64,000 nucleotides of DNA from Pavona decussata (GCA_977016875.1 CDRNST010000060.1:4402001-4466000); one strand, 5' to 3'; positions 1,773 through 61,687 are shown, counted from the first letter of the stretch. A program made the numbers and translations. Notes: generated by a model not told the origin, from the letters alone.

Positions 1773-4700
1773 CTACACCAAACCATAACATTTGAGCTTT
1801 CCTAATGTATGATAACCTTCTTCGCTCGAGTCATCTAAATCTCCCAGTCTGATTTGCGTCACAGGCAGAGCAGACTTGTCTGTCAGCAGACCGCTATCTG
1901 ATCTCCAACCACCGCCATAGTTATGACAGTTACACTTGTGACCACCGGAACAAGAGTTTGTTACTCCGCATGCGCACATCACGTTATGGCCTGTAGCTCC
2001 ACCCCAGTAGTTCATCCGGTTTCCATCACGTGACACCCACCAAGCGAAACTACCCTCAACAAACGCTACGCTCCCAGCGCACTCAAACTTGATAAACTGT
2101 TCACAGTTCTGTGACTTTCGAGTGAGTGCTGCTAGCTGAGCGGTACTGACTCCAGTGTATCTCACGTCTTTACGGTAACATCCTGCATAACCACATCCAG
2201 GAATGTTAGCAACGTGGGTTCTACTCTCACTGTCGTGACTGATTACCGTCACGCCAACTCCACCTTTGTCACTCATGTCACAATACACACGGAAGGGAGC
2301 CGCGCCTCCTTTGCCGTCAGGGTCAATCATATAATTACCTGAAGAGCTGCCACTGTTGCCTGATTTTATGCTGCTGCAGGACACTGGTTTGAGTACTTCA
2401 ATAACAGTAGTTGCCTTAATTGTTCGCCGATAATTTTTTGCCTCGCACGTGTAAGACCCAGCGTCACTTTTGGCCACTTTGCTGAGAAACAAAGTTCCGT
2501 TTGGATAAACAACATGATTTTGTGAAAGAGTTTTGCCGACTCTTTTCCAGACAGTTTCAATTGAGCCCTGTGCTTCACAATTCAGCATTACATTGCTTAA
2601 CTCTAATACAGCATCTTTCAAGGGAGGGGTGAGGGTAAATTTGAGCCTGTCAATCACCGCCAGTAGTGAAACTGCGGAATCCTGTCCAAGAAGATTCTTA
2701 GCTGAGCATGCGTACGTCCCACCATCTGCCTTTTTTACATTAAGGATAATCAAATTCCCTTCAATGACTGTGGTCTTCTCTTTCGGCACGTGGCCCAGTG
2801 CCTTTCGCCACGTGACCTTTGGTTTGGGTTGACCAGTAGCTTTGCACTGCAGGTTCACGTTTTCTCCCTCTTCAACTATGACCGACGAAGGCTTTTGAGT
2901 TATCTTGGCACCAACTAAAAGTCAACAAAGAAGAGCTATGAAAAAAAAGATTGTTTTCTTATCCTCTATATTGAATTGGAACTTTCATCATCATCATTTA
3001 TTCCTTTGCCTTACTAAAAAAAAGAAGAAATGATAGAATTTACAATAATGGCGAGGAGACCTCAAGAAACCACCAGGCTTATAAGAGAGGCCATCTCGAC
3101 TGTCATTAATAAATAGAAAGTGTGTGGTGCTGCGTAAGTGCGGCTTGGTCAATTCATGATTTTATAGATATAAACTGCAACATTTTTTTCTTGAAGGTGA
3201 AAAAACTAGATGAAGAAGTTATTGATATTGGGAGAGAATTTCAGACAGGCTTGGACATGAGGTTTAATTGGGGGAACCTAGACAAAGAGTTTTTTCCACA
3301 AGAACTTCCATTGTAATCTAGATCCAGTTCCATACGGAAAAAAATATTGAGGGAACCAAATTGATGGAAGTCTAGTCTGCAACTGACACTTCAAGGAACT
3401 TTATTTAGCTGTCAAGCAAAAACATTTGACCTGGGGGTGCTTTTTTATATGTCCAGTATTCGTTAACAGAAAAATTTAGCCATCACCGGCAGTTGCTGAT
3501 GAGCTTGACCTTTTCAGATTTTAGATTTGTTTTATTCATGTACTATTTCAATAGTTAACCACAAAAGGAAATTCCGATACATCACAAAAGTAACATAAAT
3601 ACAACATTAAATTACATAAATCATCAACGGTAAAATGTGCGCAGTGACCAAAGGAGCTTAGGCTTCTGAGTTGGTCACTGCCACGTGCGGCTAACTGGTG
3701 TATAACGTGCAACTAACTAAGTAGCACAAAACAAAAGACAAGAAAATTAAGAGTGCATAAAATGATACTACAATTTGTACCTAAAAAACAATTGAAATGA
3801 TAGTTAATAGTGAGGGCAGAGAAATCAAATACTCATTGCGTATTTAAAAGGTACAATTTGTATTGCTTGTAGAAGCTATTATATGGGAGTTTTTTTTAAA
3901 TTTAGAGGGAATTTTTTCCCAAATTTTAGACCCAGCATATGCAAAAGTGGCAGCTCCGTAATTATTCCTTATCCTCGGCTGATGAAAATTAAGGTTTGAT
4001 GCAAATCTGGTGTTGTAGCTATGAACTTCAGAGGCAAGAGTAAGAGTTCCTTTGAAAATCATTGGAGCGTTAGTAGTATTGTTAGTAATCTTATATGTGA
4101 AAGGGGCACCTTAAATTTGTAAATGTTTTCAAGTGTAAGAATACCTAAGAGATTTAAGTATGGCATAGCACTGTCCCTACTATAAATAAAGAAGATGCTA
4201 CGCACACAGTTATTCTGTTTAGTTTTAATTTTATGTAATCTGGTCTTACAACCACTGCCCCAGGTCTTAATACCATAAGTTAAATATGGATAAATGAAGG
4301 AGAAATACATGTCTTTAGACCGGAGTTTAATCAAACAAGACCGCGAATGTCAAAGACTATCATCTGTCAGAGCCATTTCATTCCCAGGGCCACCTGCTCT
4401 ACTGGTCACCAACAGAGAAGACAGAGGTCTCTGCGGACATCACTGGTGGTTCTAGCCTACACGTTGCCATACCCATCCACCACGGAGAAAGCATGGGGTG
4501 TGTACCACTAAGCGTAGGCTATGGTGGCTCGGGCCTGAAGTTTCCCTAAACCTTAGCAGGCTCAACCCCAGTTAACACCCGCGTGCAAATCTGAGATAAA
4601 ATCTCTCTAAACGAAAAGACGCACAGGATTACAAAATTCGCTGAGTATGCCGTAAAATTCCCTCCACACAAAAAGCCTTAACAAATCAGCTTCTTTAAAT

Positions 4701-6818
4701 TTTTAGTTAAGATCTGTTAAATTCCTCTATTTACCTTGAACAGTTAATGTGGCTGTTGATGCTTTTTTCCCAAGGATATTTTTTGCAACGCAAGTGTACA
4801 TTCCATCATCTTGTGACGTCACGTCTGTGATCATCAGGCCACCGCTTGATTGTACAACTCGTTTATCCGCGAGGAGACTGAAATTCTGTTTCAGCCACGT
4901 GACCTGAGGCTTTGGGTTTCCTTTAACCTCGCACTGAAATGAGGCTGCATCAGTCTGGTTGACCACTAAAGACACTAGAGGTGAGACAATAAAAGGGGCT
5001 GAGATGGATTCACCAGGATTGCCCTTGGGTCCTTGAGGGCCCTGGTCACCTTTAGGTCCTGGAGGTCCCTGGTCTCCTTGAGCACCTCTTGGTCCCCGTG
5101 GTCCCTGAGCCCCGGGCGGACCATGCTTGCCTGGGGGACCAGGCCTGCCTCGTTTTCCCCTGATACTTTTTGGGCAGTGCACCATGCAGGCCAGGCTGCT
5201 CAGAACAAGTTGAACTTCCTTCTTGATAGCTTCTCGAATGATGTTTTTACTGCCGTTTTTTTCCTTGTTGTCATTCCCCAGATGGCGTTTGTAACGAATC
5301 TGGATATCTGTGAGGATTAAACCATTTATTTATATTAAAGCATGACAGTTTGGTTTACATATCTTCTTTGCTACCTACCCCTGAACATATAGTGAAAGAA
5401 TTAAACTATTTGATATACAATTTCCTATGGAAAGGTAAAGACAAAGTAACTAGAGTATCTGCAATAAATAATTATGAGGGAGGTGGCCTCAAAATGGTTG
5501 ATATTGAAAGCATGATCAAATCTCTCCGCCTCTCCTGGCTGAAAAGAATCTTTGGTGATAATTCAGGCGTATGGAAAAGCTATTTAGAATATCTTCTAAA
5601 AGAAACAGGTGGTCTGGTTCTTTTTAATTGCAATTATAATATTAAAGACTTAAATATTAATTCTCAATTCTATGCAGAGTTATTGAAATGGTGGTCTGAG
5701 TTTCGCAAAGACAATGCAAATGATACTAACTGGCATTACTTTATCTGGAATAATCAAGAAATACGAATAAACAATAAACCAGTTTTCTATAAAAGGTACT
5801 TCAATAATGGGATTCGAACTGTGGGCGACTTACGCTTTGATCTTAATAATATCGACTCTTATGAATTACAGGCAAAATACATAGAGAAGACGAATTTTCT
5901 GGAATGGACTGGTCTACGCCACTCCATACCGCTCAATTTAAGAAATGCTAATTATAAACCGGATCCCATAGTCCTAAATCCATCCTTCAAAACTGACAGT
6001 GGTCTTTTCGATGTAACTAAAAAGAAATCTAAAGATTACTATTCTCTTTTTGTCCGTAAAAAGGCACGCTTCCCTAATCATGCGCAAAAACTAAAGTGTG
6101 AATTTAATTTATCTGATGAGGCGTTGAAAAAAGCTTTCTGTCTTCCCCATTCAGTTGCTTTTGAGCCATACGTTCAGGCCTTTCAGTTTAAGGTATTAAA
6201 CTCTATACTTTACACTAATTCAAAATTACATAAAATCGGCTATATTTCAGACAATCTGTGCTCTTTTTGCAAACGGGAATCAGAAACTATACAGCATCTC
6301 TTTTATAATTGTTCTTACTCAATTACTTTTTGGAAAAACTTTGAATTATATTACTTATCCCTGACAAAACAACAAATACATCTTGAATTGAGAGATATTT
6401 TAATCGGTGTTCTAACACCAGAATGCCCCTTACTAAATTACCTGTTACTTATAGGAAAAATTTATTTATGGGGGTGTAGAAGAAATAACGAACTTCCGAA
6501 TATAGGTGGTTACAAATTTAAAGTATCGTTAAAGTATGACACAGAGAAATTTATTTGTACGAAAAATAATACATTAGACATATTTAAAAAGAAATGGACA
6601 ATATTTAGACCTATTTAATATATATGACTTGTACGGGTGTGACTTTGAATTTTTTGTGAGTGAGTGCATGAGAGCATGAGATGAGTGAGTGAGTGTTGTG
6701 AATGGTGTGTTAGCGGGCCAGCGAGTGAGTAAGCTAATTGTAATATTGTACAAAGTGTAAGTGCGTAAGTACTGTCTAGTTTATTATTGTATGTAACTGT
6801 GTGTTTTCTTGCAAATAA

Positions 6819-6849
<31 letters not shown>

Positions 6850-8239
6850 GACAGTTTGGTCCGTAAGCGTAGGCCTTAAAGGCAATTGAAATCAGTGAAG
6901 ATGGTTGTTCTTAACGCTCTAATTGACATTGTGTTAAATGAACCATTAAAAACTGAGAAGCCCTTAAAATCCCGGGGGGGTTCTCCCTTATATGGGCTAT
7001 ATAGGTATGTGCAGCGCCAAAGGGTATGGTTTTTCGGCTGTTTTGGTACGGTCATAAAGAGGGTATCGATTTTAGCCACTTTGCCGCTATTTTGGTAATA
7101 AATAGGGTATAGATTTTTGCACTGTAGTCCTGGGTTCGTTTTTTTTTTTAGAAGAAGCTACTTCAGGTCATAAATAGGGTAGGGAAAATCGCAGATTTTG
7201 GTCATAAATAGGGTAAGGGTTTTGGGAAGCGGACCGCACACCCTTACCCAATTTTTTTTGGAGTACCCCCCCGGGCTTAAAATCCAATAGTTCACAAGGA
7301 AGTATATTTGCTTCTCAAGCAACGGGAACAATGGTACTCAAGAACTTCCTTTACAGCATTTAAGGAAACGTTTGAATTTGTAGTTGCAAGCTAACATCTT
7401 CATTAAACGAAACGGTCAGTGTTCCTTGAGGTTTTCACGTTTTCTCAAACGGTAATCTAGCGGGATGATTTTTTTATAAAACATAATTTAAGAAAGTTGT
7501 AAATGAAAATGAAAGCGATTTATTGAGGGGTCAAATAACCGCCATGCACGTGAGAGGGGTTTAGTTTGATTTGTATTTTTAGCAATCAGTAATGGGATAA
7601 ACTGCGACCCGTGAAAGACATTATTTGCTGTCAAGAGTCAAGTTTTTAATTGCATCAAAGCAATTACGATATTAAATGGCGGTAGCAAGACACCGATCAC
7701 AGAAACATTATCGGCAATTGCTCTGTAAGTGCGGCGTTATTTCATTTTTCTACACTATTTATAAGGAGTTGAAACTCCCAGTACTTCAGAAAAAAACTCT
7801 TGAGTATTATCGGGTGCGGCCGGAGTCTTATACTTGCGCACTAAGGTATTTTTGGACTGTTTGGCCATATCGTGTAAAGGAGACTGAAACGTTCGTAATA
7901 GAAACAGCCCGATCAGATGTCAGTGATTCTCCCTGCAATCCTCCCTTGAGTTAAAAGCAAAATATTGATTTTCTTAAATGCAACTGAATACTCACCATTT
8001 TCGGCCGAGTCGCCGTGCAAGAAGCGCTTCAACGAAGAATCCGCAGTCGTCTCGTCATGTGCAGTGTTTTGTGGCTCGACATTTTCTTGTCTTTGTTGAT
8101 TCAAGGCTTGAAGCATTTGTCGATGAGCGTGAAGTTCGATCTCGACGTGAATCAGTGCCACGAAACAAACACAAACGGAGACAAATATTGATGAAAACAT
8201 CACCGTATTGGAGACCGGGCGCGACTTTGATTTCTCCAT
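1773..8239 (-). CDS. Gene A1: type II TM collagen-3xIg protein with CASPR-type fibrinogen-like C-terminal domain (~652 aa, intact)
   Basis: Exons 8239-7996, 5307-4735, 2914-1773; all introns GT-AG, phase 1; 1959 nt open. Hydrophobic [29 protein letters not shown], 17 GXY triplets, Ig motifs (W..DxGxYxC), then [46 protein letters not shown] as in the CNTNAP/neurexin IV fibrinogen-like domain. Confidence 0.88.
2985..3248 (-). mobile_element. Short retroposon 3' remnant with AATAAA(TGA)n tail
   Basis: Insertion relative to A2/A3 (GGAACTT^..CTTGGAC); also present in A4 at ~47052-47314. Confidence 0.55.
3520..4312 (-). mobile_element. CR1/L2-like LINE 3' fragment in intron 2 of A1
   Basis: Post-RT motifs [27 protein letters not shown]; frameshifted; absent from A2/A3 introns. 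Ends approximate. Confidence 0.75.
5355..6849 (+). mobile_element. 5'-truncated L1/Tx1-clade LINE in intron 1 of A1
   Basis: Open ORF2 C-terminus (FLWKGK..GGLKMVD, zinc-knuckle [18 protein letters not shown]), AATAAA 6814-6819, poly(A) 6824-6849, 11-bp TSD GACAGTTTGGT (5344-5354 and 6850-6860); empty site in A3 near 30206. Confidence 0.92.
6971..7275. mobile_element. MITE with CCCGGGGGGGT(A/T)CTCC TIRs and 8-bp TSD
   Basis: 16-bp TIRs with one mismatch; TSD CTTAAAAT at 6963-6970 and 7276-7283; empty site in A3 at ~30373. Confidence 0.9.
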
Positions 8240-8470: not shown

Positions 8471-8479
8471 TTCCGGGAA
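8471..8479. promoter_or_regulatory. Candidate STAT (GAS) site TTCCGGGAA ~230 bp upstream of each type-A ATG
   Basis: Exact match at 8471, 24211, 31555, 50814 and 56226; function not shown. Confidence 0.35.
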
Positions 8480-9323: not shown

Positions 9324-9454
9324 NNNNNNNNNNNNNNNNNNNNNNNNNNNNNNNNNNNNNNNNNNNNNNNNNNNNNNNNNNNNNNNNNNNNNNNNNNNNN
9401 NNNNNNNNNNNNNNNNNNNNNNNNNNNNNNNNNNNNNNNNNNNNNNNNNNNNNN
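9324..9454. other. Assembly gap
   Basis: Run of N. Confidence 1.
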
Positions 9455-10264: not shown

Positions 10265-13200
10265 TTATGATAGCCTGATAAACACGTGCGGTGGATATGC
10301 CATATCAGTAGTAAAAGTAAATGGCCTTCGTTTCGTGTGATCGAGGCACACGTAGCACGAGTTCTTTCCTCCAGACCAGTACTCAATGGCAGTACAATCC
10401 GCACAGAGGTGTTTGCATTCCTGTGAAGTAGTGCCTCTTGAGATCAATTGCCGATTGCTGTGACCACACCATTGGGGTGTGTAGTGCAACCATACTAAAA
10501 AAAGAAAATAAACGTATTCAAAAAAATTGGCTGAGATAACTAAATATTATCACTAACTCACGCACGGAGTTTTGCTCGTACGCTATTGAAATGCCTTTAG
10601 TGTCAGTTTAACGGCAATTTTATGGGTATATCAACGAGAAACCACTTTCATTGTCCATTTTGTCCAAAAGTGTCGGTCTGATGAAACAAGTGAATTCTTT
10701 TTGTATTCTTGCCTGTCTAGTGGGCGTTACCAGGGAGGGAAGGGTGAGGATATTCACTCTGTTGAAACAACTGAAATTGTAATGCCGTAATTTCCAGAAA
10801 CAGACCCCCGCATCGTAGTAACACCCGTCCAAAAAAAGAGGAATAAACCAGTCTTACAAGAAATATTAAGACATACGTGTCACTTATAAACTGGTTTGAC
10901 TGTAACAAAAATAAAGTAAAAAAACAAACAAACAAACAAGCAAGCAACTACAACAACAACAACAAAAAGATAAAAAGAGGGAAAGAAAACTAGTGAGAAT
11001 GAGGCATACAGTACTGTAATTGGTCAAAAGTGGATTGTATACCAGACTTGATCACAAACGATGCCATCTTAACGGGAAACCTATTTGTAATGAGTAGACT
11101 GAAATCCCAACACAGTCCCCCCCCCCCCAGTCCCCCCCCCCCCCCCTCAATTTGAACACTTTCTTCATTCACAATAAACCCCTCCTCTTGTTTCTCTGTC
11201 ATGACACACTGGTGAGTGATGACCACCACGTCATTATTACGTCACCCCTTTTTTACTCGAGAGCACACCGTAGCAAGTCATGTCGCCTACAGTATCATAC
11301 AATTACCTTCTTTCTTGAGAACTTCAAGAACAGTTGTTGCTTCGATGGAACGATGAAAGTTTTTCGCAACGCATATATAAGACCCAGAATCGTTTTGGGA
11401 AACATTCTTTAAATGCAAAGTTCCATTTGGATAAAGAACATGATTTCGAGGGAGGATTTTACCGGCTCTTTTCCAAACAATCTCTTTTGTACCCTGAGCT
11501 GTACAATTCAGCATCACATTGTTATACTTTTTCGCAACAACTTTCAGGGGAGGGGTAATGATATATTTGAGCCTGTCAGTGACCATTACTATGGCGACGG
11601 CGGAGTCCTGTCCAAGGAGATTCTTAGCTGAGCATGCGTACGTCCCGCTGTCTGCTTTGGTTACATTCCACAAGGTAAGCTTCCCATCGATTGCTGCAGC
11701 TCTTGCTTTTGGCACGTGACTTAATGCTTTTCGCCACGTGATCTTTGGAGTTGGCTGACCAGTAGCTTTGCACTGCAGGCTCACATTTTGACCTTGTTCA
11801 ACAATGAGAGACGAAGGCTCTTGAATGATCACTGCGCCAACTGCAATTAAAATATTGACACCAAGTTAAATTGTCTCTAGGCAGGAGCGCGTCGGTCTGT
11901 TACCCAGAAAAGCCGATATCCCACATCCCTCGTGCTCGTCCGAGTTTTCACGCGCCCTCTTTGATCTAGCAGTTTGTAGGTTTGTCTCATATGTACTTAA
12001 AGTCAAATGGTTTTGTTCGCCACAAATATTTTAGCTGCAGCTCAGCGTGCAGTGTATTCAATCGGAATGCGGAAGGTTGCAGTTTCGATTGGTAATTTTT
12101 GGACATAAATTTGCACGTTAGTCATCATAATCACCATCGTCGTCTTCATCGTCAGCGTCATTAACATCATCATCGTCATCATAACCAATATCGTTATTAT
12201 TATTAGTTGTTATCATTATCGCTAAAGGTGATATAAATGTGTCATAAACAGCCACGCGTATTTGTTATGTAATCAAAGTCGTCACGCTTTTCGTTTTGTT
12301 TGTACAAAGAGAGCACATGACAACAACTTGATTTACTGGTTTTTGTAGGATATCAAATTTAGTGGGTTTATTTAGGGGCGTGTGATTTAACTCGAAAGGG
12401 GTTCTTTCTGTACGATATCAGAGTGGAATAAATCAGAATTTATACGAAAACGATTACGACTACTTCGTGTTTATAACAAAATGAGAGCCTACTAAAAATT
12501 AGATACTAAACTATTTGTAGCACACGCATACATTAGTCGTTGCATTTGGCCCACGCAAGCACCTGATGCTTTTCATTTCTCAAAATCATAGTTGACAACA
12601 GCTGTTCTGCGGAGGGTGGGGGGGGGGGGGGACGGGAATGCGACAGCTACTGATAGGCTATAACTAAATCCACCCAATGTTTCTTTCTGATACACGACAC
12701 GATAGTACCTGTCGTAAAAAGTAGAATATGCACTTTTATTCACCTTGAACAGTTAATGTGGCCGATGATGTCACAATTCCAAAAATATTTTTTGCTACAC
12801 ACGTGTACACTCCATCATCTTGTGACGTCACATCAGTCATCAACAGGCTACCACGTGACTGCACAACTCGTTTGTCTGCGAGGACAGTGGAGTTCTGTTT
12901 CATCCAAGTGACTTGAGGTTCTGGGTTTCCTTTAACGTGGCATTGAAACGAGGCTGCACCGGTTTCGTTTACCACTAAAGACACTGGAGGTGACAAAATA
13001 GAGGGGGCTGAGATCGATTCACCAGGATCGCCCTTCGGTCCTTGAGGGCCCTGGTCACCTTTAGGTCCGGGAGGTCCCTGGTCTCCTTGAGGACCCTTTG
13101 GCCCCTGTGGACCCTGAGGCCCAGGCGGACCATGCTTGCCTGGGGAACCAGGCCTACCTCGTCTTCCCCTGATACTTTTCGGGCAGTATACCGTGCAGGC

Positions 13201-14258
13201 CAGGTTGCTCAGGGCAAGTTGAACTTCTTTCTTGATGTCGTCACGCCTGATGGTTTCATTAGCGTTGGTTTTTCTGTTTATATTTTCCAAATGGCGTTTT
13301 TGACGAATCTGAATTTCTGGAAGTGAAGGAGAGACGTCTCATAAAATTCTGGTATAAGTTCCCTCTGAACAGCAACAACAGAAAAAGGCTGTTAATAAGC
13401 CTAACCCATAAAAAAATTTCTTTGAACGAATTAGCCAAGGGCTTATATTTAATGACTCAAATTATATTTTTGGCTGATTAGATCTTTCACAGATCCTGCG
13501 TATACTTGCAGCATTTTCGTTGTGCGGTTCCTTGCTTATTGTTTGCTTATATTTAAGCATCATACTTTGGTCATTTACCTTCATCTTTAAATGTGAACTA
13601 ACGTGTTTCGACGGACGATTTCAAAACGAGGGGTTTACAAGCTGCCGTTTTACCCCAACCACCTCCCCCTATCGGGCCCCTATCCCATAAGCAAATACAG
13701 GCAACATTTAAACCTAACTGGGTCGGAGCATTACTACGTATGAAAACTTTTGAGCAATGCAGTAACGTTAGGTTTGAAGGGCGATGACTGGCTTTTCTAT
13801 TTGAGTATTTATTCTCAGTCGAATTTGGGCGTTTCTAACTGGTTATAAATGAAACTCTTCATAAAATTTTCAAATAAACAAGAGTCACAACTGGCGGAAC
13901 TGACACATAAACGAAAGGAAAACACGAAATTGAACTGTGAGACCTCTAATATCCCCTTGAGTTCATGACGATCGCGAACACTTTTAAGACTTTTTAAAAT
14001 CAAATTCAAAAACTACTCACCTTTTTCTCCGTCGCCATGTAGTATCTTCAACAAAGAATCCGCAATCGTCTCGTCATGTACAGTGTTTCGTGGCTCGACA
14101 TTTTCTTGTCTTTGTTGATTCAAGGTTTGAAGCATTTGTCGATGAGCGTGAAGTTCGATCTCGACGTGAATCAGTGCCACGAAACAAACAGCAACGGAGA
14201 CAAATATTGATGAAAACATCACCGTGTTGGAGACCGGTCGCGACTTTGATTGCTCCAT
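10265..14258 (-). CDS. Gene B1: type II TM collagen-3xIg protein with 6-Cys PAN/apple-like C-terminal domain (~524 aa, intact)
   Basis: Exons 14258-14021, 13316-12744, 11840-11307, 10494-10265; phase-1 GT-AG introns; RQKR furin site. The last exon reads [32 protein letters not shown].. in frame and is conserved in three paralogs. Confidence 0.82.
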
Positions 14259-32438: not shown

Positions 32439-32439
<1 letters not shown>

Positions 32440-41480: not shown

Positions 41481-41493
41481 GAAAAAAAAAAAA

Positions 41494-41524
<31 letters not shown>

Positions 41525-48800: not shown

Positions 48801-50581
48801 TAATCTATTTACCTTGAACAGTTAACGTGGCTGTTGATGCCTTTTTCCCAAGGATATTTTTTGCAACACAAGTGTACATTCCACCATATTGTGACGTCAC
48901 GTCTGTAATCATAAGGCCACCGCTTGATTGCATAATTCGTTTATCCTCGAGGAGACTGGAATTCTGTTTCAGCCACGTGACCTGAGGTTTTGGGTTTCCT
49001 TTAACCTCGCACTGAAACGAGGCTGTACCAGTCTGGTTTACCACCAAAGACACTGGAGGTGACACAATAGAAGGGGCTGAGATGGATTCACCAGGATTGC
49101 CCTTGGGTCCTTGAGGACCCTGATCACCTTTAGGTCCGGGAGGTCCCTGATCTCCTTGAGCACCTCTTGGTCCCTGTGGTCCCTGAGGCCCGGGTGGACC
49201 ATGTTTGCCTGGGGGACCAGGCCTGCCTCGTCTTCCCCTGATTCTTTTCGGGCAGTGCACCATGCAGGCCAGGCTGCTCAGAACAAGTTGAACTTCCTTC
49301 TTGATAGCGTCTCGAATGATGTTTTCACTGGTGTTTTTTACCTTGTTATCATTCCCCAGCTGGCGTTTGTGACGAATCTGTATATCTGTGAGTGAAAAAA
49401 GCAGTTATTTATATATCAAGGCATGGCAGGCTGGTTATTAAGCCTGGGGCTGAAACGCTAAAAGGAAATTAGCACAAACTACAATACATTTGATTGAACC
49501 AGTAAAAACGTTGTGGCATTTTGTTATATTAAAGTAAACATAGATGTTTATCGTAATTTCTGCATTGCTATGCTTTCTTAAAATTGAAACTGAGGAGCCC
49601 TTATAATCCCAGTTACGACACGGGTTTACATAGCAGTACACAAGGAAGTATATTCGGTTCGCAAGCAGCTGAAACAGTGATACTCAAGAACTTCCTCTGT
49701 AGCATATAGGGAAACGTTTGAATTTGTGGGTGCAAGCTAAGATCTTCCTTAAACCAAAGAGTGTTCCTTGAAGTTTTTACGATAAGCGCAATAAAACGCT
49801 GACTAGTTGGATGAATCGAACGCAAGAGAAAAAATAAAGGAAAGCGAAAGGTATTTATACAGGGGTCCACTAAGCGCCACGCACGCGCGGTGAGAGACGT
49901 TTATTTAGGTTTGTATTTTTAGCAGTCAGCGATGGGATATAACGCGACTCATGAAAGAAATTATTTGCCCTCAAGAGTCAAGTTTTTAATTGCATAAAGC
50001 AAATACGATATTAAATGGCAGTAGCGAGAGACCGATCGCGGAAACATTATCGGCAATCGCCCTATAAGTGTGGCGTTATTTCATTTTTCTACACTATTTA
50101 TAAGGAGTTTTAACTCCCAGTACCTCAGAAAAAAACTCTTGAGTATTATCGGGTTCAGCCGGAGTCTTACACTTACGCATTAAGGTATTTTTGGACTGTT
50201 TGGCCGTATCGTGTAAAGGAGTGACTGAAACGTACGTAAGAGAAACAGCCTGATCAGATGTCAGTGATTCTCCCTTCAATCCTTCCTATGAATTAAAAGC
50301 GAAATCTTGACCTTCTAAACTGCAACAGTATACTCACCATTTTCCGAGTCGCCGTGCAAGAAGCCGCGCTTCAACAAAAAATCCGCAATCGTCTCGTTGT
50401 GTACCGTGTTTCGTGGCTCGACATTTTCATGTCTTTGTTGATTCAAGGCTTGAAGCATTTGTCGATGAGCGTGAAGTTCGATCTCGACGTGAATCAGTGC
50501 CACGAAACAAACAGCAACGGAGAAAAATATTGATGAAAACATCACCGTGTTGGAGACCGGGCGCGACTTTGATTTCTCCAT
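45833..50581 (-). CDS. Gene A4: type II TM collagen-3xIg-fibrinogen-like protein (~654 aa, intact)
   Basis: Exons 50581-50338, 49385-48813, 46980-45833; phase-1 GT-AG introns; RHKR; 17 GXY. Confidence 0.87.
47597..48392 (-). mobile_element. CR1/L2-like LINE fragment in intron 2 of A4 (same insertion as in A1)
   Basis: Near-identical to 3520-4312 at the same intronic site; ORF 47921-48412 is open here. Confidence 0.75.
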
Positions 50582-51979: not shown

Positions 51980-54900
51980 CTATGCCGAACCATAACATTT
52001 GAGCTTTTCTAATGTGTGATAACCTTCTTCGCCCGAGCCATTTAAATCTCCCAGTCTGATTTGCGTCACAGGCAGAGCAGACTTGTCTGTCAGCAGACCG
52101 CTGTCTGATCTCCAACCAATGCCATTGTTATGACAGTTACACTTGTAACCACCGGGACAAGAGTTTGTTACTCCGCATGCGCACATCTTGTGATAGCCTG
52201 TAGCTCCACCCCAGTAGTTCATCCGTGTTCCATCAAGTGACACCCACCAAGCGAAACTGTCCTCAATAAACGCTATGTCATTATTGCATTCAAACTTGAT
52301 AAACTGTTCACAGTTCTGTGACACTCGAGTGAGAGCTGCTAGCTGAGCGGTGCTGACTCCAGTGTATCTGACGTCTTTACTGTAACATCCTGCAGAACCA
52401 CATCCAGGAATGTTAGCAACATAAGTTCTACTCTCAGTGTCATGACTGATGACCGTCACGCCAACTCCACCTTTGTCACTCATGTCACAATACACACGGA
52501 AGGGAGTCACGCCTCCTTTGCCGTCAGGGTCAATCATATAATTACCAGACGAGCTTCCACTGTTGGCTGATTTTATGTTGCTGCAGGACACGAGTTTGAG
52601 TACTTCAACTACAGAAGTTGCCTTAATTGTTCGTCGATAATTTTTTGCCTCGCACGTGTAAGACCCAGCGTCACTTGTGGTCACTTTACTAAGAAGCAAA
52701 GTTTCGTTTGGATAAACAATATGATTTTGCGGAAGAGTTTTGCCGACTCTTTTCCAGACAGTCTCAATTGAGCCCTGTGCTTCACAATTCAGCATCAGAT
52801 TGCTAAACTCTGATACAGCATCTTTCAAGGGAGGGGTGAGGGTAAATTTCAGCCCATCAATCACCGTCAGTAGTGCGACGGCGGAGTCCTGTCCAAGAAG
52901 ATTCTTAGCTGAGCATACGTAAGCTCCGCCATCTGCTTTTGTTACACTGAGTATAGTCAAATTCCCTTCGCTCATTGCAGTGTTGTCTTTCGGCACGTGA
53001 CTTAACGTTTTACGCCACGTGACCATTGGTGTTGGCCAACCCGTAGCTTTGCATAGCATGCTCACGTTTTCCCCTTCTTCAACGATGACAGAGGAAGGCT
53101 TTTGAGTAATTTTTGCGCCAACTACAAGTAGATATACAACAGCTATGATTAGTCACGCCGAAAAGAACACGGGACCGGAGTTGTCAACAACAATTTTGAA
53201 TTTTTTTAATCCCAAACCAACCGATAAATTGGGGGAATATTTTCTCTTGTCAATCGTTCCGCCATAGTGGGTAGAGTCTGAAGCGTACAATTGAAAGTAA
53301 TCTTCAAGTAAAATTTGAGTCAGCCGTTAACATTTAGCCTGACGTGTTTAACCACATGCCAAGTATTATAACTGGAAATTTAGCAATAATTAAATGCAGT
53401 TGCTGGTTGACCTTTTACAATGGAGTTTGATCATGAATTTTCAACCGTATGTGCGTGAGTCTATCATCTGGTTAGAGCAAACTCTTTTCCAGAGTCCCCT
53501 TTCTACTAATGAGCAGCAAGAAGAAGCCGGAAAGCTCAGTGAACGAGATTCAGCTTTAAAATTCGAAAACTGTCCGCTACTCAATTTCGTACTCTAACCC
53601 TGCTCTTATCTGAAGTTCACGTAGACCTTCAAAGGCATATCGCCATTAATGTGCTAATCAAAGACCAAAACAAAATTCCAAAATACCACCACGTATAGCT
53701 ACAGAATTATGCAGGCTTCTATTTATATGCAAAATTCCAACATTCCATTCAGTACGAAGTTTTTACAAAACTAACTTCTTAACGTTTTTAAAGGATCCGA
53801 CTAATTAACATATTCACCTTGGACGTTTAACGTGGCCGATGATTTCCTTTCTCCAAGGATATTTTTTGCAACGCATGTGTATATCCCGCCATCTTGTGAC
53901 GTCACGTCTGTAATCATTAGGCCACCACTTGATTGTACAAATCGCTTGTCCGTGAGGAGACTGGAATTCTGTTTCAGCCACGTAACCTGAGGTTCTGGGT
54001 TTCCTTTAACCTCGCACTGGAACGAGGCTGCACCACTTTTGTTTACCACCATAGATACTGGAGGTGACACAATAGAAGGGGCTGAGATAGATTCACCAGG
54101 ATTGCCCTTGGGTCCTTGAGGGCCCTGATCACCTTTAGGTCCGGGTGGACCATGTTTACCTGGGGGACCAGGCCTGCCTCGTCTTCCCCTGATTCTTTTC
54201 GGGCAGTGCACCGTGCAGCCCAGGCTGCTCAGAACAAGTTGAACTTCCTTCTTGATAGCTTCTCGAATGATGTTTTCACTGGTGTTTTTTTCCTTGTTGT
54301 CATTCCCCAAATAGCGTTTGTGACGAATCTGGATACCTGTCAGTGAAAAAAGCAGTTATTTATACATCAAGGCATGACTGGCTGGTTATTTAGCTTGGGC
54401 CTGAAACGCTTAAAGGAAATTAGAGTTAGTGAAGATGGTTGTTCTTACAAATAGCTATAATTAAAATGTATTAATCGAACCAGTAAAAACAATATGGCAT
54501 TTTGTAATGTAAAAGTAAACACTGATATCTTTCGTTTTTTTTTTTGCATTGCTATGTTTTTAAAATTGACGCCGAAGAGCCTTTCAAATCCCAGTTACGA
54601 CCTGGGTGTAGATAACAGCTCACAAGGAAGTAAATTTTTGGGCTCGCAAGCTGAGTGAGCTGAAGCAATGATGCTCAAGGACTTCCTTTGTAGCATTTAA
54701 GGAAACGTGAATTTGTGGGTACGAGCTAAGATCTTCCTTAAACCAACGAGTGTTCCTTGAGGTTTTCACAAAGCGAAATAAAACGCTGATCTAGCGGGAT
54801 GGGTTGGTTTTTATAAAACAGAAAAAATGAACCAAATGTAAGAAAGACTTAGCTTGGGCCTGAAACGCTAAAAGGAAATTAGCACAAACTACTATACGGT

Positions 54901-55990
54901 TGATTGAACCAGTAAAAACAACGTTGTATTCGTTATATTAAAGTAAACATAGATGTCTCGCGATATTTTTGCATTGGTATGCTTTCTAAAATTTGATACT
55001 GGGGAGCTCTTATAATCCCAGTTATAGGGTATAGATAACAGTTCACAAGGATCGAAGTATATTTTGCTCGCAAGCAGCTGAAACAGTGATACTCAAGAAC
55101 TTCCTTTGTAGCATTTAAGGAGACGTCAGTTGAATTTATGGGTACAAGCTAAGATCTTCTTTAAACCAAAGAGTGTTCCTTGAAGTTTTCTCGATAAGCG
55201 CAATGAAACGCTGATCTAGATGGCTGAACCGAATGTAAGAAAGAAATAAAGGAAGGCGAAAGGTATTTATACAGGGGTCCACTAAGCGCCACGCACGCGC
55301 AGTGAGAGCCGCTTATTTTAGTTTGTATTTTAGCAGTCAATGATGGTCTATACCGCGACTCATAAAAGAAATTATCTCAAGAGTCAAGTTTTTAATTGCA
55401 TAAAGGCAATTTTTTAAATGGCAGTAGCGAGACACCAATCACAGAAACATTATCGGCAATCCCTCTGTAAGTGTGGCGTAATTTCATTTTTCTACTACGC
55501 TATTTATAAGGAGTTGAAAACCCAGTACTTCAGAAAAAAACACTCTAGAGTATTATCGGGTTTAGCCGAAGTCTTACACATGCGCATTAAGGTATTTTTG
55601 GACTTTTTGGCCATATCGTGTGAAGGAGACTGGAGATACTGAAACGTTCGTAAGAGAAACAGCCTGATCAGATGTCAGTGATTCTCCCGTCAATCCTCCC
55701 TTGAGTTAAAGCGAAATCTTGATCTTCTTAAATGCAACTGAATACTCACCATTTTCCGTGTCGCCGTGCAAGAAGCGCTTCAACAAAGAATCCGCAATAG
55801 TCTCGTCATGTACACTGTCTCGTGGCTCGACAGTTTCTTGTCTTTGTTGATTCAAGGCTTGAAGCATTTGTCGATGAGCGTGAAGTTCGATCTCGACGTG
55901 AATCAGTGCCACGAAACAAACAGCAACGGAGAAAAATATTGATGAAAACATCACCGTGTTGGAGACCGGGCGCGACCTTGATTTCTCCAT
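51980..55990 (-). CDS. Gene A5: type II TM collagen-3xIg-fibrinogen-like protein with short collagen (~633 aa, intact)
   Basis: Exons 55990-55750, 54336-53818 (519 nt, 54 nt shorter, 11 GXY), 53121-51980; divergent intron 2 and Ig2. Confidence 0.87.
54389..55242. repeat. Diverged ~460-bp tandem duplication in intron 1 of A5
   Basis: TTAGCTTGGGCCTGAAACGCT recurs at ~54390 and ~54849 with collinear downstream sequence. Confidence 0.75.
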
Positions 55991-57734: not shown

Positions 57735-60700
57735 TTATGATAGCCTGATAAACACGTGCGGTGGATAACTGAGATCAGCAGTATTAGTATATAGACTTCG
57801 TTTAGTGTGATCGAGGCACTCGTGGCAATACATTGCTCCTCCAGACCAGTACTCAATGGCATTACAATCCGCACAGAGGTCTTTGCATTCCTGTGAAGTA
57901 ACGCCTATATTGATGAGTCGCCGATTCCTACCACCACACCATTGGGGTGAGTACTCCAACCACAGGGCTAGAAAAAGAAAGAAAACGTATTCAAAAAATT
58001 TGGCTGAAATAACTAAATATTATCACTAACTCACGCACGGAGTTTAGCTCGAATTGAAATGTCTTTAATCGCAGTTTAACGGCAATTTTATGGGTATATC
58101 AGCGACAAACCACTTTCATTGTACATTTTGTCCTAAAGTGTTGGTCTGATGAAACAACTGAAAATGTTTTGTATTCTTGCCTGTCTAGTGGGCGTTACCA
58201 GGGAGGGAATGGTGAGGATAATCACTCTGTGGGAATTGTACTGAAATTGAAATGGCGTAATTTCGAGAAAAAGACCCCCGCATAGTAGCCCTTAGGCTGC
58301 AATATGATTTTAAATTAAAACAAACAATCCATCCATCCGTAGTAACACCTGTCCGACAAAATAGTCTTACAATTCAGACATACGTGTCACTAGCTGATAT
58401 AAACTGGTTTGACTGTATTAAAAACAAAAATAAAGTAAAAAAAACAAACAAACAAGCAAAAAACTACAACAACAACGACAAAACATAAAGAGATAAAAAG
58501 AGGGAAAGAAAAAGTAGTGACAATGAGGCATACAGCACTGTAATTGGTCAAAAGTGGATTGTATACGAGACTTGATCACAAACGATGCCATATTAAGGAA
58601 AAACCTGTTTGTAATAAGGGGACGGAAATTCCAACACAGTCCCCCACCCCCCTAATTTGAACGTTCTCTTCAAATTGCAATAAACTGCTCTTGTTTCTCT
58701 GACACACTGGTGAGTGATGACCCGACCACGTCATTATTACGACACCCCTTTTCCACCCTAGAGCACACCGAAGCAAGTTATGTCGCCTACAGTATCATAC
58801 AATTACCTTCTTTCTTGAGCACTTCAAGAACAGTTGTTGCTTCAATGGAACGCTGTAAGTTTTTGGCAACGCATGTATAAGACCCGGCATCGTCTTGGGA
58901 AACATTCTTTAAATGCAAAGTTCCATTTGGATAAAGAACATGATTTAGAGGGAGGATTTTACCGGCTCTTTTCCAAACAATCTCTTTTGTACCCTGAGCT
59001 GTACAATTCAGCATCATGTTGTTATACTCTTTCGCAACAACTTTCAGGGGAGGGGTAATGATATATTCGAGTCTGTCAGTGACCATTACTATGGCGACGG
59101 CGGAGTCCTGTCCAAGGACATTCTTAGCTGAGCATGCGTACGTCCCGCTGTCTGCTTTGGTAACATTCCGTAAGCTGAGATTCCCATCGATTACTACAGC
59201 CCTTGCTTTTGGCACGTGACTAATTGCTTTTCGCCAAGTGATCTTTGGAGTTGGCTGACCAGTAGCTTTGCATTGCAGGCTCACGTTTTGTCCTTGTTCA
59301 ACGGTGACAGGCGAAGGCTTTTGAATGATCACTGCGCCAACTGCAATTAAAATATTGACACCAAGTTAAACTGTCTCAAAGCAGGTATGTTATCAAGGAA
59401 TGTCCCTCGTGCACGTCCGAGTTTTCACGCGCCCTCTTTGATCCAGCAGTCTGTAGGTTTGTCTCATATGAACTAAAAGTCAAACGGCCTTGTTCGCCAC
59501 AACTGTTTTAGCTGCAGCTCAGCGTTCAGTGTATTCAACTGGAATGCGGAAGGTCACAGTTTCGACTGCGGGTAATTTTTGGACATAAATTTGCACTTTA
59601 GTCATCATAATAATCATCGTCGTCATCTTCAGCGTCATTAACATCATCATCGTCATCATCACCAATATCGTTATTGTTATTAATTGTTATCATTATCATC
59701 ATCATCATCATCATCATTATCATTATCTTGAAAGGGAATGTAAAAGCTAGGTGACTTATTTAGACGTGAAAACTGCAAAGGACCGCGAACGATAATGCTG
59801 CTAGTTGACGTAGGATCTACAAGAGACCTAATCAGCCAAAAATAAACTGTAACACAAACTGCAAGGCTGATACTACGTACGTAGTATCAGCCTTGCAGTT
59901 TGTGTGACTTATTTGACTTATTTGTCGCATGCGCATACATTAGTCGTTGCATTTGGCCCACGCAAGCATCTCTTGCTTATCATTGCTCAAATTCATAGTT
60001 GACAACAGCTGTTGTGTGGGGGTGGAGAAGGGGGGAATGCGACAACTACTGATTGGCTACAACTAAATCTACCCGATGTTTCTTTTTGATGGACGATAGT
60101 ACCTGTCTTAAAAAGTAGAATATGCACTTTTATTCACCTTGAACAGTTAATGTGGCCGATGATTTCACAACTCCAAAAATATTTTTTGCTACACAAGTGT
60201 ACACTCCATCATCTTGTGACGTCACATTAGTAATGATCAGGCTACCACGTGACTGCACAACTCGTTTGTCTGCGAGGGCAGTGGAATTCTGTTTCATCCA
60301 AGTGACTTGAGGTTGTGGGTTTCCTTTAACGTGGCATTGAAACGAGGCTGTACCGGTTTCGTTCACCACCATGGACATCAGAGGTGACACAATAGAGGGG
60401 GCTGAGATAGATTCACCAGGATCGCCCTTGGGTCCTTGAGGGCCCTGATCACCTTTAGGTCCAGGAGGTCCCTGGTCTCCTTGAGGACCCTTTGTTCCCT
60501 GTGGTCCCTGACGCCCGGGCGGACCTTGCTCGCCTGGGTGACCAGGCCTACCTCGTCTTCCTCTGATACTTTTCGGGCAGTGCACCTCGCAGGTCAGGTT
60601 GCTCAGGGCCAGTTGAACTTCTTCCTTGATGTCGTCACGCCTGATGGTTTCATAAGCGTTGGTTTTCCTGTTTAAATTTTCAATATGGCGTTTTTGACGA

Positions 60701-61687
60701 ATCTGAATTTCTGCAAGTAAAGAAAGGATTCACCATAAAATTCTGGTATTAGCCTCTCCAGTAAAAAAAAGAAAAAAACCCGCAAAAAGCCACCAAATCT
60801 CAGACGCCAGCATGCATCGGACAACTTGAAGCCCTCCCCATATATGTCCATGGACTGGTGGCTGTTTTAAGAAGTGGGATGTATTTGGTTTAGCGTTTTA
60901 ATATATTTTTATTTCTCGTTGATAGAGCCATTTTGAAACACAAATTTCTTCCAACAGTAAGGACAGTAAGCCTTCCTGAAAATAAGCCAGCATAAAAAAA
61001 GTCCTTTGAGCAAATGTAGATTAGGGCTTATATTTTGGTCATTTAGTTTGATCCTTAAATGTGAATGGAATGCCGACGATTGGAGGCAGAAACATTATTA
61101 ATCGTGATTTAAGATGATTTCCAAACCAGGGGTTTACAAAGCGGCCATTTTACCTCAGCCACCTCCCCAAGCTATTTAAGCAACATTTGAACCTTACTGG
61201 CTAGGAGCATTACTACGTATGGAAACTTTTGGGCAATGCGTGACACAGTGATGAATCCGTTTTTCCATTTGAATATTTCTTCTCAGTCGAATTTGTAATT
61301 CTTCATAAAAATTTCAAATAAACAAAAGTCACAACTGGCGGAACTAACACATAAACGAAATGAAAACATGACATTGATCTGTGAGAACCCCAGTATCCCC
61401 TTGAGTTCATGACGATCGCCAGCACTTTTTAAAATCGACTTCTAAAACTACTCACCTTTTTCTCCTTCACCATGTAGTATCTTCGACAAAGAATCCGTCG
61501 TCTCGTCATGCACAGTGTTTAGTGGCTCGACATTTTCTTGTCTTTGTTGATTCAAGGCTTGAAGCAGTTGTCGCTGAGCGTGAAGTTCGATCTCGACGTG
61601 AATCAGTGCCACGAAACAAATAGCAATGGAGAAAAATACTGAAAATATCACCGTGTTGGAGACCGGGCGCGACTTTGATTTCTCCAT
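57735..61687 (-). CDS. Gene B3: type II TM collagen-3xIg-PAN-like protein (~523 aa, intact ORF)
   Basis: Exons 61687-61456, 60710-60138, 59340-58807, 57967-57735; phase-1 GT-AG introns; RQKR. Confidence 0.82.
59852..59905. repeat. Perfect 54-bp palindrome
   Basis: ACACAAACTGCAAGGCTGATACTACGT|ACGTAGTATCAGCCTTGCAGTTTGTGT, no spacer. Confidence 0.95.

Follow-up and report, generated by a model that had tools for sequence, protein, structure and literature searches.

Cnidarian ficolin-like (CniFL) proteins were reportedly described by Baumgarten et al. in 2015. In those parts of the published accounts that are considered here, CniFL proteins combine a collagen region and a fibrinogen domain with, in most members, a transmembrane (TM) segment and three immunoglobulin (Ig) domains (PMC5094078, PMC7654579). 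According to the same parts, the genes are multi-copy in anthozoans (van der Burg et al. 2016, PMC5094078), the proteins have already been proposed as pattern-recognition receptors of the lectin-complement system (PMC5094078, PMC7654579), Vibrio infection of Exaiptasia induces CniFL along with lectin-complement genes (PMC7654579), and CniFL expression varies with symbiotic state (PMC4840205). Several better-known systems share portions of this layout. Vertebrate ficolins, collectins (MBL), and C1q have a Cys-rich N-terminal segment, a short collagen stalk, and clustered heads; in snail FREPs, Ig domains are joined to a fibrinogen-related head within a diversified multigene family; and type II transmembrane collagens, ectodysplasin, and gliomedin (colmedins) have a cytoplasmic N-terminus, a juxtamembrane helical segment, and a furin-type R-x-K/R-R site before the collagen.

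We analyzed a 64-kb stretch of the genome of the stony coral Pavona decussata (hereafter, the window), which forms the central part of a tandem array of 12 members (contig coordinates 4,390,085-4,478,643). Examination of stop-to-stop frames, together with an HMM scan, across the whole window detected eight gene sets and no more, each of them on the minus strand, without additional family relics (Table 1). For all eight genes, we obtained models with an ATG, GT/AG introns, a stop codon, and a coding sequence length divisible by 3, and every intron is in phase 1. The original prediction of eight co-oriented paralogs thus stands, and the limits that it gave, 1773 and 61687, are the outer ends of the models of genes H and A. 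It did not mention the in-frame stops that make two of the eight pseudogenes: gene D contains a TAA in Ig2 (~35820-35822) and another TAA in the PAN exon (33436-33438), and gene F contains a TAG (21215-21217) and a TGA at the first head cysteine (20897-20899). The remaining six copies are intact. Two N gaps lie between family genes, 9324-9454 (H/G) and 40621-40795 (D/C), and no family exon touches either; the latter gap is inside an RPE65-like gene on the opposite strand that is unrelated to the array. Intron 1 of gene H contains a plus-strand zf-RVT ORF (5350-6618), and intron 2 of gene C contains a repeat fragment (47924-48427) that has a copy in intron 2 of gene H and shows no significant Pfam match.

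Table 1. Family genes and terminal modules in the window
Feature	Position	Strand	Exons	Description
Gene A	57735-61687	-	61456-61687, 60138-60710, 58807-59340, 57735-57967	PAN-type, intact, 523 aa, stop TAA; HMM match in all four exons
Gene B	51980-55990	-	55750-55990, 53818-54336, 51980-53121	COLFI/fibrinogen-like head, intact, 633 aa
Gene C	45833-50581	-	50338-50581, 48813-49385, 45833-46980	COLFI/fibrinogen-like head, intact, 654 aa
Gene D	33382-38268	-	38028-38268, 36534-37106, 35339-35872, 33382-33614	PAN-type, pseudogene and chimera
Gene E	27611-31323	-	31083-31323, 29594-30172, 27611-28752	COLFI/fibrinogen-like head, intact, 653 aa
Gene F	20288-23979	-	23739-23979, 22278-22850, 20288-21432	COLFI/fibrinogen-like head, pseudogene
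Gene G	10265-14258	-	14021-14258, 12744-13316, 11307-11840, 10265-10494	PAN-type, intact, 524 aa
Gene H	1773-8239	-	7996-8239, 4735-5307, 1773-2914	COLFI/fibrinogen-like head, intact, 652 aa
Module of gene A	57738-57965	-		Predicted PAN/apple fold, 76 aa, 6-Cys
Module of gene D	33385-33612	-		Equivalent of gene A module
Module of gene G	10268-10492	-		Equivalent of gene A module
Head of gene E	27614-28213	-		COLFI-scoring, fibrinogen-related; equivalents in B, C, F, and H occupy the final ~600 nt of exon 3

Motif checks, Pfam searches, and hydropathy calculations bear out the claim that the TM segment, RxKR, CxxxC, GXY repeats, and three Ig domains are common to the eight copies. A 19-residue hydrophobic stretch (mean Kyte-Doolittle hydropathy 2.4) with a net positive N-terminal flank (three basic residues and one acidic) fits a type II membrane anchor. 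The predicted cytoplasmic N-terminus is ~11-12 residues long, and no signalling motif is evident in it, which makes the designation of these proteins as receptors doubtful. The putative coiled coil is no more than a short helical heptad-like stretch. About 50 residues past the TM segment, between the anchor and the collagen, all eight copies contain R-[QHY]-K-R, a putative furin-type cleavage site; CxxxC is present in 8/8 as well, and both motifs recur in RefSeq models from Montipora, Oculina, and Acropora and in two transcripts from another coral (L001 and L002). Each copy has 17 uninterrupted GXY triplets, except for gene B, with a collagen shorter by six triplets (11); even with this shortest stalk, Pfam Collagen (PF01391) scores 27.7 bits (cut-off 27.2), compared with 38.9 bits in L001. 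Every gene encodes three I-set Ig domains (Pfam, E 1e-22 to 1e-32 per exon). In seven of the eight copies, and in the Montipora, Oculina, Acropora, and L001 homologs, the collagen includes P-G-K-H-G-P (gene A has GEQ, with the Lys replaced). In its position pattern, this motif resembles the site through which ficolins, MBL, and C1q bind MASP/C1r-C1s (P-G-K-x-G-P type; PMC2856262), but only putatively, given that Xaa is His rather than aliphatic and that such a motif can occur by chance in Pro/Lys-rich collagen.

The heads that follow this common chassis are of two kinds, five and three in number, as originally proposed. Genes B, C, E, F, and H share a large head (~200 aa) fused to the Ig3 exon, which the original prediction took for a CASPR-type fibrinogen-like domain. 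It matches Pfam COLFI (PF01410), the fibrillar procollagen C-propeptide family, with 34.7-35.4 bits against a cut-off of 26.2; in gene E (34.7 bits), the match spans head residues 3-182 and profile positions 37-219 of 233, and COLFI is matched by 22 of 22 aligned heads. Fibrinogen_C (PF00147), in contrast, scores below its cut-off (19.6-20.1 versus 22 bits, E ~6e-4) and only over the N-terminal ~45 aa. In a PDB profile search, procollagen C-propeptides came out best (E 0.002), and fibrinogen beta was matched at E 0.01. Because the head resembles the procollagen C-propeptide more closely than it does the FReDs of ficolins, the acetyl-binding site of the latter should not be assumed. The likeness to the C-propeptide (PDB 5k31, 4ae2) is a profile match that exceeds the curated cut-off and covers ~180 of 233 positions, whereas sequence identity is low (PDB E only 0.002-0.015) and there is no Cys in the Ca-loop region, judging from the sequence. 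Moreover, the head does not adjoin a long fibrillar triple helix: three Ig domains separate it from a collagen of only 11-17 triplets.

In genes A, D, and G, the protein ends in an unrelated 6-Cys domain of ~76 aa, encoded in a separate phase-1 exon. The AF2 model of the gene A module (pLDDT 97.3, 82-row alignment) is most similar, in VIA-align, to plasminogen PAN (Z 8.6, rmsd 2.0, 67/76 residues); other matches include the HGF N domain (7.9), leech antiplatelet protein (7.8), Wsc1 (6.8), SML-2 (6.7), and TgMIC4 (6.4). The 28 highest rows belong almost entirely to PAN, apple, WSC, or MANEC domains, with a thyroglobulin chain as the exception. Atlas neighbours are PAN_1, PAN_2, and MANEC, and Foldseek agrees on the families. 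The module is thus predicted to adopt the PAN/apple fold, a disulfide-stabilised five-stranded sheet on one helix, with the same order of elements as in the equally disulfide-rich modules of TgMIC4, SML-2, plasminogen, HGF N, and WSC (Z 6.4-8.6, with 66-69 of 76 residues aligned). Galactose or heparin is bound by some proteins that have this fold. Unlike these modules, the 6-Cys domain matches no Pfam model, including PAN_1 to PAN_4, MANEC, and WSC (E<=0.1 for the window exons, E<=0.01 for homologs), and its C-terminus bears a distinctive conserved motif, Y-P-P-H-V-F. The module is rare, with 109 clusters among 1.84 billion representatives, and is also found on other secreted coral proteins, with EGF, ShK, or tandem-PAN. 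In L001 and L002, which are intronless contigs, TM-collagen-3Ig-PAN forms one ORF of 527-529 aa; hence, this variant is expressed in that coral. P0250 is a further example, and no annotated protein with this architecture was found.

The original prediction regarded the architecture as undescribed, which does not hold, as TM, collagen, three Ig, and fibrinogen already define CniFL (PMC5094078, PMC7654579). Like CniFL, the genes in the window encode an N-terminal TM segment, Collagen (PF01391), and three Ig domains between the collagen and the head, followed, in the five genes of the COLFI (fibrinogen-like, FBG) type, by a fibrinogen-related C-terminal domain. In the part of the published alignment considered (PMC5094078), the Adi_CniFL1/Ap_CniFL1-3/Cp_CniFL3 clade shows the motifs of these heads, including 'WWVSRDG'; the heads of published CniFL members thus share motifs with window heads that pass Pfam COLFI and fall short of Fibrinogen_C. 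A search for homologs returned 2276 at E<=1e-5; the named ones among the 120 matches listed are from scleractinians, and full-length RefSeq homologs have 650-659 aa. The three PAN-type genes contain no Fibrinogen_C domain and are paralogs of CniFL rather than CniFLs under the definition by that domain. What is new is their PAN/apple end domain, previously unannotated and not reported in the portions of the CniFL literature searched; the furin site, CxxxC, and tandem-array dynamics are likewise not among the features described in those portions.

The notion of interchangeable heads is also too strong. The two types share 74% nucleotide identity along Ig1-Ig3 (dS ~0.8) and form separate clades; they are two old lineages, interleaved along the array, rather than one chassis with freely swapped ends. 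Gene D is a chimera: at the nucleotide level, its linker is 86-93% identical to the FBG type and shows 72-76% identity to the PAN type, and its Ig1-Ig3 match the PAN type at 92-97%. Gene H is a mosaic, where Ig2-3 are 98% identical to gene C at the nucleotide level and the head only 89%. Together with the two pseudogenes in the window and a deletion relic just beyond its edge, the chimera and mosaics support the birth-and-death evolution originally proposed, in which copies of the array are duplicated, altered by gene conversion or unequal crossing-over, and turned into pseudogenes. By pN/pS, the heads change 2-4 times faster than the stalks (Fisher p 0.002-0.1; PAN, 0.018); dN/dS is 0.13 in collagen, 0.17-0.45 in Ig, 0.57 in the COLFI-like head, and 1.1-1.3 in PAN. 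Because the PAN value is not significantly above 1, relaxed constraint accounts for it as well as diversifying selection does.

With a probability of roughly 0.6, we read the locus as a CniFL-family array of putative immune lectins that would be shed in a ficolin/collectin-like layout. From N to C, each intact gene encodes a predicted cytoplasmic end of ~11-12 aa, a signal-anchor TM, a putative coiled coil, R-x-K-R, CxxxC, a 17-triplet collagen, three I-set Ig domains, and a head. Chains would trimerise via the juxtamembrane helix and the collagen region and be joined through the CxxxC cysteines, and a furin-type convertase would free a soluble product, with a Cys-rich N-terminus, collagen stalk, Ig spacer, and head cluster, suited to binding multivalent extracellular ligands and, perhaps, to engaging MASP or complement. 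The first lineage, with the COLFI-scoring head fused to the Ig3 exon, corresponds to the published Adi_CniFL1/Ap_CniFL1-3 clade; in the second, the COLFI-like head is replaced by the PAN/apple module on its own phase-1 exon. Such proteins would differ from ficolins, MBL, and C1q, which have a cleaved signal peptide, in being type II membrane proteins, in inserting three Ig domains between stalk and head, and in having a head that is not a canonical FReD, CRD, or gC1q; snail FREPs, for their part, have a canonical FReD and lack collagen and a TM anchor.

Three I-set Ig domains and a COLFI-like end are just as characteristic of adhesion and matrix proteins. The family could consist of structural or adhesive membrane collagens, akin to collagens XIII/XVII/XXIII/XXV or gliomedin, that are shed into the matrix and function in cell-matrix or cell-cell adhesion (for example, mesogleal, calicoblast, or neural) instead of non-self recognition. 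The type II anchor, predicted furin site, and collagen reproduce the membrane-collagen/colmedin layout, I-set Ig are typical adhesion modules, the head scores in the fibrillar-collagen C-propeptide family, and collagen and Ig are under purifying selection. In their details, the proteins differ from that layout: olfactomedin and TNF domains are absent, an Ig spacer is present, and collagens XIII/XVII have a much longer collagen region. We consider this reading rather unlikely: the great size of the family in one genome (at least 150 chassis, that is, collagen-Ig1, exons scored of 1771 candidates genome-wide), its pseudogenes and fast-evolving heads, and the induction of CniFLs by Vibrio in Exaiptasia, as given in the part of the source considered (PMC7654579), fit a recognition family better than core matrix genes.

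It is less probable still that the COLFI-like head serves mainly in trimerisation and chain selection, as in procollagens, such that its variability would set co-assembly (homo- versus heterotrimers) rather than ligand. The chain-recognition sequence of fibrillar procollagens sits in COLFI, and both the near-full-length match above the Pfam cut-off in every aligned head and the best PDB matches point in this direction. However, with ~280 aa of Ig between head and collagen helix, C-to-N zipper nucleation is implausible, and the PAN-type paralogs keep the same stalk without COLFI. A role as polymorphic self/non-self labels, determining allorecognition or symbiont specificity, would be in line with the tandem array, gene conversion, variable distal domains, and, in the part of the report considered, the effect of symbiotic state on CniFL expression (PMC4840205); against the cytoplasmic tail without signalling motifs, we regard it as very improbable.

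Elsewhere in the genome, the same chassis adjoins exons for canonical Fibrinogen_C, F5/8C (discoidin), and TLDc, with matching phase-1 sites. Tentatively, stony corals might possess a genome-wide cassette system, in which one chassis (type II anchor, furin site, two Cys, collagen, and three Ig) is joined at phase-1 exon junctions to at least 5-6 unrelated heads, which may include COLFI-like, PAN/apple, canonical fibrinogen, F5/8C discoidin, TLDc, and Gly-rich domains, giving a large repertoire of recognition molecules that could be released as trimers, perhaps as heterotrimers. If so, this repertoire would be much broader than the 'ficolin-like' family so far described.

The stop-to-stop reading frames of the whole window, in which the GC content (about 0.40) is evenly distributed, display a four-fold frame pattern that is repeated eight times on the minus strand. 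Scanning all frames of the window with exon HMMs (positions 58417-58476 masked) yielded exactly eight sets of family exons and no further relics of the family. The eight sets are all on the minus strand and their outer limits, 1773-61687, equal those of the original prediction; the eight co-oriented paralogs stand as proposed. Every copy could be modelled with an ATG, canonical GT/AG splice sites and a stop codon, the coding length being a multiple of three, and all introns of the family genes are in phase 1. The exons were analysed one by one, and the full-length architecture is based on two intronless contigs of another coral (L001 and L002) and on RefSeq models. No family exon abuts either of the two runs of N in the window. 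The gene models are good and the underlying observation is sound.

Between the family genes, the plus strand carries three copies, one of them partial, of an RPE65/carotenoid-oxygenase-like gene (E 1e-18 to 1e-40 with the Pfam model), which were apparently duplicated along with the array. Retroelement remnants, among them, in intron 1 of gene H, an ORF of 422 aa that encodes a zf-RVT domain, and near-identical fragments in intron 2 of genes H and C, account for the longer introns of these two genes.

Coordinates of family genes and other features (positions in the window unless a contig or locus is named; G000 is this genome, C60 the contig of the window)
Feature	Position	Strand	Remark
Gene A	61687-57735	-	ATG/GT-AG/stop model; 6-Cys head
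Gene A, exon 2	60138-60710		G-E-Q variant
Gene B	55990-51980	-	ATG/GT-AG/stop model; large head
Gene B, exon 2	53818-54336		short collagen stalk
Gene C	50581-45833	-	ATG/GT-AG/stop model; large head
Gene D	38268-33382	-	ATG/GT-AG/stop model; 6-Cys head; pseudogene
Gene E	31323-27611	-	ATG/GT-AG/stop model; large head
Gene F	23979-20288	-	ATG/GT-AG/stop model; large head; pseudogene
Gene F, in-frame stops	21215-21217; 20897-20899		
Gene G	14258-10265	-	ATG/GT-AG/stop model; 6-Cys head
Gene H	8239-1773	-	ATG/GT-AG/stop model; large head
N run 1	9324-9454		between genes H and G
N run 2	40621-40795		between genes D and C; inside unrelated opposite-strand gene (third RPE65-like copy)
RPE65-like copies	15729-18265; 24440-25003; 39726-42670	+	Pfam RPE65
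Retroelement remnant	5350-6618	+	
Retroelement remnants	3847-4349; 47924-48427; 41034-41543	-	
Array outside the window	G000:C60 4390085-4401402; 4471630-4473060; 4475022-4478643		loci L029, L032-L034
Partial locus with 6-Cys exon	L023 993-1671 (G000:C243:365792-366470)		

Exon 1 encodes about 11-12 net-positive residues, a 19-residue stretch with a mean hydropathy of 2.4 and then acidic residues, a pattern that fits a type II signal anchor; this is followed by a short helical Gln/Leu-rich segment, termed a coiled coil in the original prediction. Exon 2 starts with R-[QHY]-K-R in all eight copies and continues with N-glycosylation sequons and CxxxC, a second basic cluster (R-G-[RK]-R) located 3' of CxxxC, and a collagen region of 17 uninterrupted GXY triplets, which leads through the junction G-E-S-I-S-A-P into Ig1. 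In gene B, the collagen stalk is shorter by six GXY triplets (18 residues), that is, 11 remain. In the stalk, seven of the eight copies, as well as homologs from four other corals, contain P-G-K-H-G-P, which matches, as a motif only, the MASP/C1r-C1s binding motif P-G-K-x-G-P of ficolins and collectins (PMC2856262); gene A has G-E-Q in place of G-K-H. Exon 3 encodes Ig2 and Ig3 and, in genes B, C, E, F and H (hereafter, head-fused), extends into a ~200-aa head with no intervening intron. In genes A, D and G, a phase-1 donor lies directly after Ig3, and a six-cysteine module of 76 aa is encoded by a fourth exon. Thus, the anticipated common stalk (RxKR, CxxxC, (GXY)n and three Ig domains) is present in the sequence of all eight copies, with Pfam support for Collagen and three I-set domains, and so are the two kinds of C-terminal ends, in five and three genes, respectively.

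A search with exon 3 matched 2276 proteins, and full-length RefSeq relatives of 650-659 aa, named 'uncharacterized' or 'peroxidasin-like', come from Montipora, Oculina, Acropora and Porites. Because these models have the same order of parts, they support the predicted splicing. The architecture is already in the literature as that of the cnidarian ficolin-like family, CniFL (PMC5094078), which has been proposed as an input to the lectin-complement pathway (PMC5094078, PMC7654579). In the alignment included in PMC5094078, Adi_CniFL1, Ap_CniFL1-3 and Cp_CniFL3 form a distinct clade with the head motifs 'VYCDM[ST]DKGG' and 'WWVSRD[GN]', in place of which the canonical members have 'VYCDMTTDGG' and 'GAWW'. 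The heads in the window contain exactly the motifs of the distinct clade, and therefore the five head-fused genes belong to this clade of the CniFL family; the notion of an undescribed system is wrong. Since 'peroxidasin-like' is the automatic name of family members in Montipora and Stylophora, the tandem, co-oriented and heat-responsive 'peroxidasin' clusters described in the Porites australiensis genome paper (PMC8691061) may represent the CniFL-type family under another name.

By the Pfam cut-offs, the large head is assigned to COLFI, the fibrillar-collagen C-propeptide family: all 22 heads tested matched this model at 34.7-35.4 bits (cut-off 26.2) over profile positions 37-219 of 233. The match to Fibrinogen_C, the kind of domain to which this head was originally likened, stays below the cut-off (20.1 bits or less, with a cut-off of 22) and is confined to the first ~45 residues. 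The precomputed Pfam lists for more than 100 homologs likewise give PF01410 and almost never PF00147. When a profile of the head was compared with PDB sequences, procollagen C-propeptides (E 0.002) ranked ahead of fibrinogen beta (E 0.01); a phmmer search of the PDB with the head produced only marginal N-terminal matches, to fibrinogen beta. A language-model feature search of the Atlas with the head returned COLFI and GON clusters; the GON identity was rejected, with no Pfam support at E<=1. With a head that appears to be of the COLFI type, the case for sugar binding by analogy with ficolins is weakened, so that this activity cannot be assumed for the clade of Adi_CniFL1, Ap_CniFL1-3 and Cp_CniFL3.

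The 76-aa module had no Pfam match, either in the window exons or in the homologs, and its profile, searched against 1.84 billion representative proteins, retrieved only 109 clusters at E<=0.001, mostly single-exon calls. Single-sequence AF2 prediction of the 6-Cys exon was unusable (pLDDT 48), and an AlphaFold model from an 82-row alignment, with a pLDDT of 97.3 for the module, was used instead. In an exhaustive structural comparison, the first match to this model was the plasminogen PAN domain (Z 8.6, rmsd 2.0, 67 of 76 residues); others included the HGF N domain (Z 7.9), leech antiplatelet protein (Z 7.8), yeast Wsc1 (Z 6.8), the Sarcocystis lectin SML-2 (Z 6.7), and the apple domains of Toxoplasma MIC4 (Z 6.4) and factor XI/kallikrein (Z 6.3-6.4). 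Among the best 28 matches, nearly all belong to the PAN/apple fold class, with one exception, a thyroglobulin chain, and Foldseek together with the ESM Atlas recovered the same families. Judging from the predicted fold, the small head is a divergent PAN/apple module.

Scanning the contigs of the JGI metagenome collection with the module detected two contigs without introns, 2.3 and 3.3 kb long, in each of which a single ORF of 527-529 aa encompasses the anchor, basic site, two cysteines, collagen, three Ig domains and PAN module; the Ig3/PAN junction coincides with the position of the phase-1 intron in the window genes. A third protein of this type, P0250 (484 aa), is encoded in a 1.7-kb contig from a sister sample. 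The intronless contigs are spliced messages of another coral, in which the PAN variant is expressed. The same data include a 271-aa secreted protein with two EGF domains and a closely similar module at the end. In a region-restricted search of 5.8 billion proteins, those from JGI were the only ones of 291-926 aa with the module, and no annotated database entry with the TM-collagen-3Ig-PAN architecture was found within the sensitivity of a word-based search. In other coral proteins, the module follows EGF repeats or ShK-like repeats or occurs as tandem copies after an acidic region. The longer of these proteins, which come from Oculina, Pocillopora and Montipora, have the module at the C-terminus, and each is named 'uncharacterized'; examples are Oculina XP_078360774.1, with the module after EGF repeats, and Pocillopora XP_058949911, with two tandem modules. 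Secreted coral proteins that end in this PAN/apple-like module are represented by positions 35-847 of L003 and by proteins P0125, P0149, P0180 and P0160.

The whole array spans G000:C60 4,390,085-4,478,643, with the window at C60:4402001-4466000, and comprises 12 members. The additional ones are two intact-looking head-fused genes of the COLFI type upstream, a fourth, intact PAN-type gene downstream, and a relic that consists of exon 1 and the second half of the head only. A locus on another contig, L023, retains ~25 codons from the end of Ig3, then the same donor with the beginning of the intron, and a PAN exon that is 69% identical to that of gene A; it is a dispersed partial duplicate of a PAN-type gene. 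For the collagen-Ig1 exon, the genome (602 Mb) contains 1771 candidates, at least 150 of them scored matches, with large arrays on other contigs; for the PAN module, it contains 19 matches. We sampled 13 other loci with the common stalk, or chassis; in five, a COLFI-like head is fused to Ig3. In the remaining ones, the Ig3 exon ends in a phase-1 donor and the next phase-1 exon downstream encodes a different head: canonical Fibrinogen_C (270 and 213 bits; classical CniFL), F5/8 type C, TLDc, or a Gly-rich domain that matches no Pfam model. Arrays followed by such different heads are at L014 (contig C85), L015 (C36), L022 (C24), L013 (C288), L018 (C519), L019 (C273) and L021 (C52). Where the head is not fused, exon 2 encodes the basic site, a pair of cysteines, 20-27 GXY triplets and the G-E-S-I-S-A-P junction, and exon-1-like anchors are present. 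That these heads belong to the chassis genes is a lead drawn from proximity and phase alone, and hints at a much wider head repertoire.

Modular, birth-and-death evolution of the array was correctly interpreted from the start, as indicated by the array relic, two pseudogenes, a chimera and a mosaic. Gene F contains two in-frame stops, the second of which replaces the first cysteine of the head, and gene D has an in-frame TAA codon in Ig2 and another in the last exon. In the linker, the DNA of gene D is 86-93% identical to the head-fused type and only 72-76% to genes A and G; from Ig1 on, its identity is 92-97% with A and G and 70-80% with the remaining genes. Gene D is a chimera of the two types. 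Between genes H and C, identity is 98% in Ig2-Ig3 but only 89% in the head, and the head of gene C shares 95% identity with the heads of E and F; stalk and head have therefore recombined within one type as well.

Between the PAN and head-fused types, dS is 0.17 in exon 1 and about 0.8 in Ig2-Ig3 (74% nucleotide identity). A tree of Ig2-Ig3 separates a clade of the array's four PAN-type genes (100/99) from the seven head-fused genes (91/84). When the PAN types of the two corals are constrained to group, the log-likelihood falls by only 0.23 units (p-AU 0.35); when all array members are constrained to group, it falls by 23.7 units (p-AU 0.076). Thus, the split between the two types probably predates Pavona decussata, and the 5' parts were probably homogenised later. 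The dN/dS ratio is 0.13 in the collagen, 0.17-0.45 in the Ig domains, about 1 in the linker, 0.57 in the COLFI-like head and 1.1-1.3, not significantly above 1, in the PAN head. The non-synonymous excess in heads compared with stalks gives Fisher p values of 0.002-0.1 for six COLFI-type pairs and 0.018 for A versus G. Changes in the PAN module are concentrated in three loop segments, and neither the cysteines nor the core vary.

The domain order, folds and conservation were established here, and the most likely mode of action is inferred by analogy with type II membrane collagens, ectodysplasin, gliomedin, ficolins and collectins. The chains would join at the juxtamembrane helix and collagen region and be cross-linked by the two cysteines; a furin-type convertase would cut at R-x-K-R, releasing a product that shares the layout of ficolins and differs by the Ig spacer; and the clustered heads could bind repetitive ligands avidly. 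The tail of ~11-12 residues argues against signalling of its own, and therefore 'membrane-bound precursor of a released recognition molecule' fits better than 'receptor', the term applied initially.

The CniFL family and its architecture are already known. New here are a lineage with PAN/apple heads, the assignment of the other head, in one published clade, to COLFI, a recombination pattern, with the array illustrating re-assortment of heads and stalks, and the hint of a much wider repertoire. The CniFL-family stalk also carries a module without a database model, so that the fibrinogen head is not a defining feature, and this PAN/apple-like module merits its own family model. Studies of coral genomes and expression probably miss the family behind automatic names such as 'peroxidasin-like'. 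In corals and anemones, CniFLs represent one of few candidates for lineage-specific pattern-recognition molecules, with ties to infection and symbiosis that come from expression only; the conserved putative furin site and the triplet resembling the MASP motif would make shedding and complement coupling experimentally approachable.
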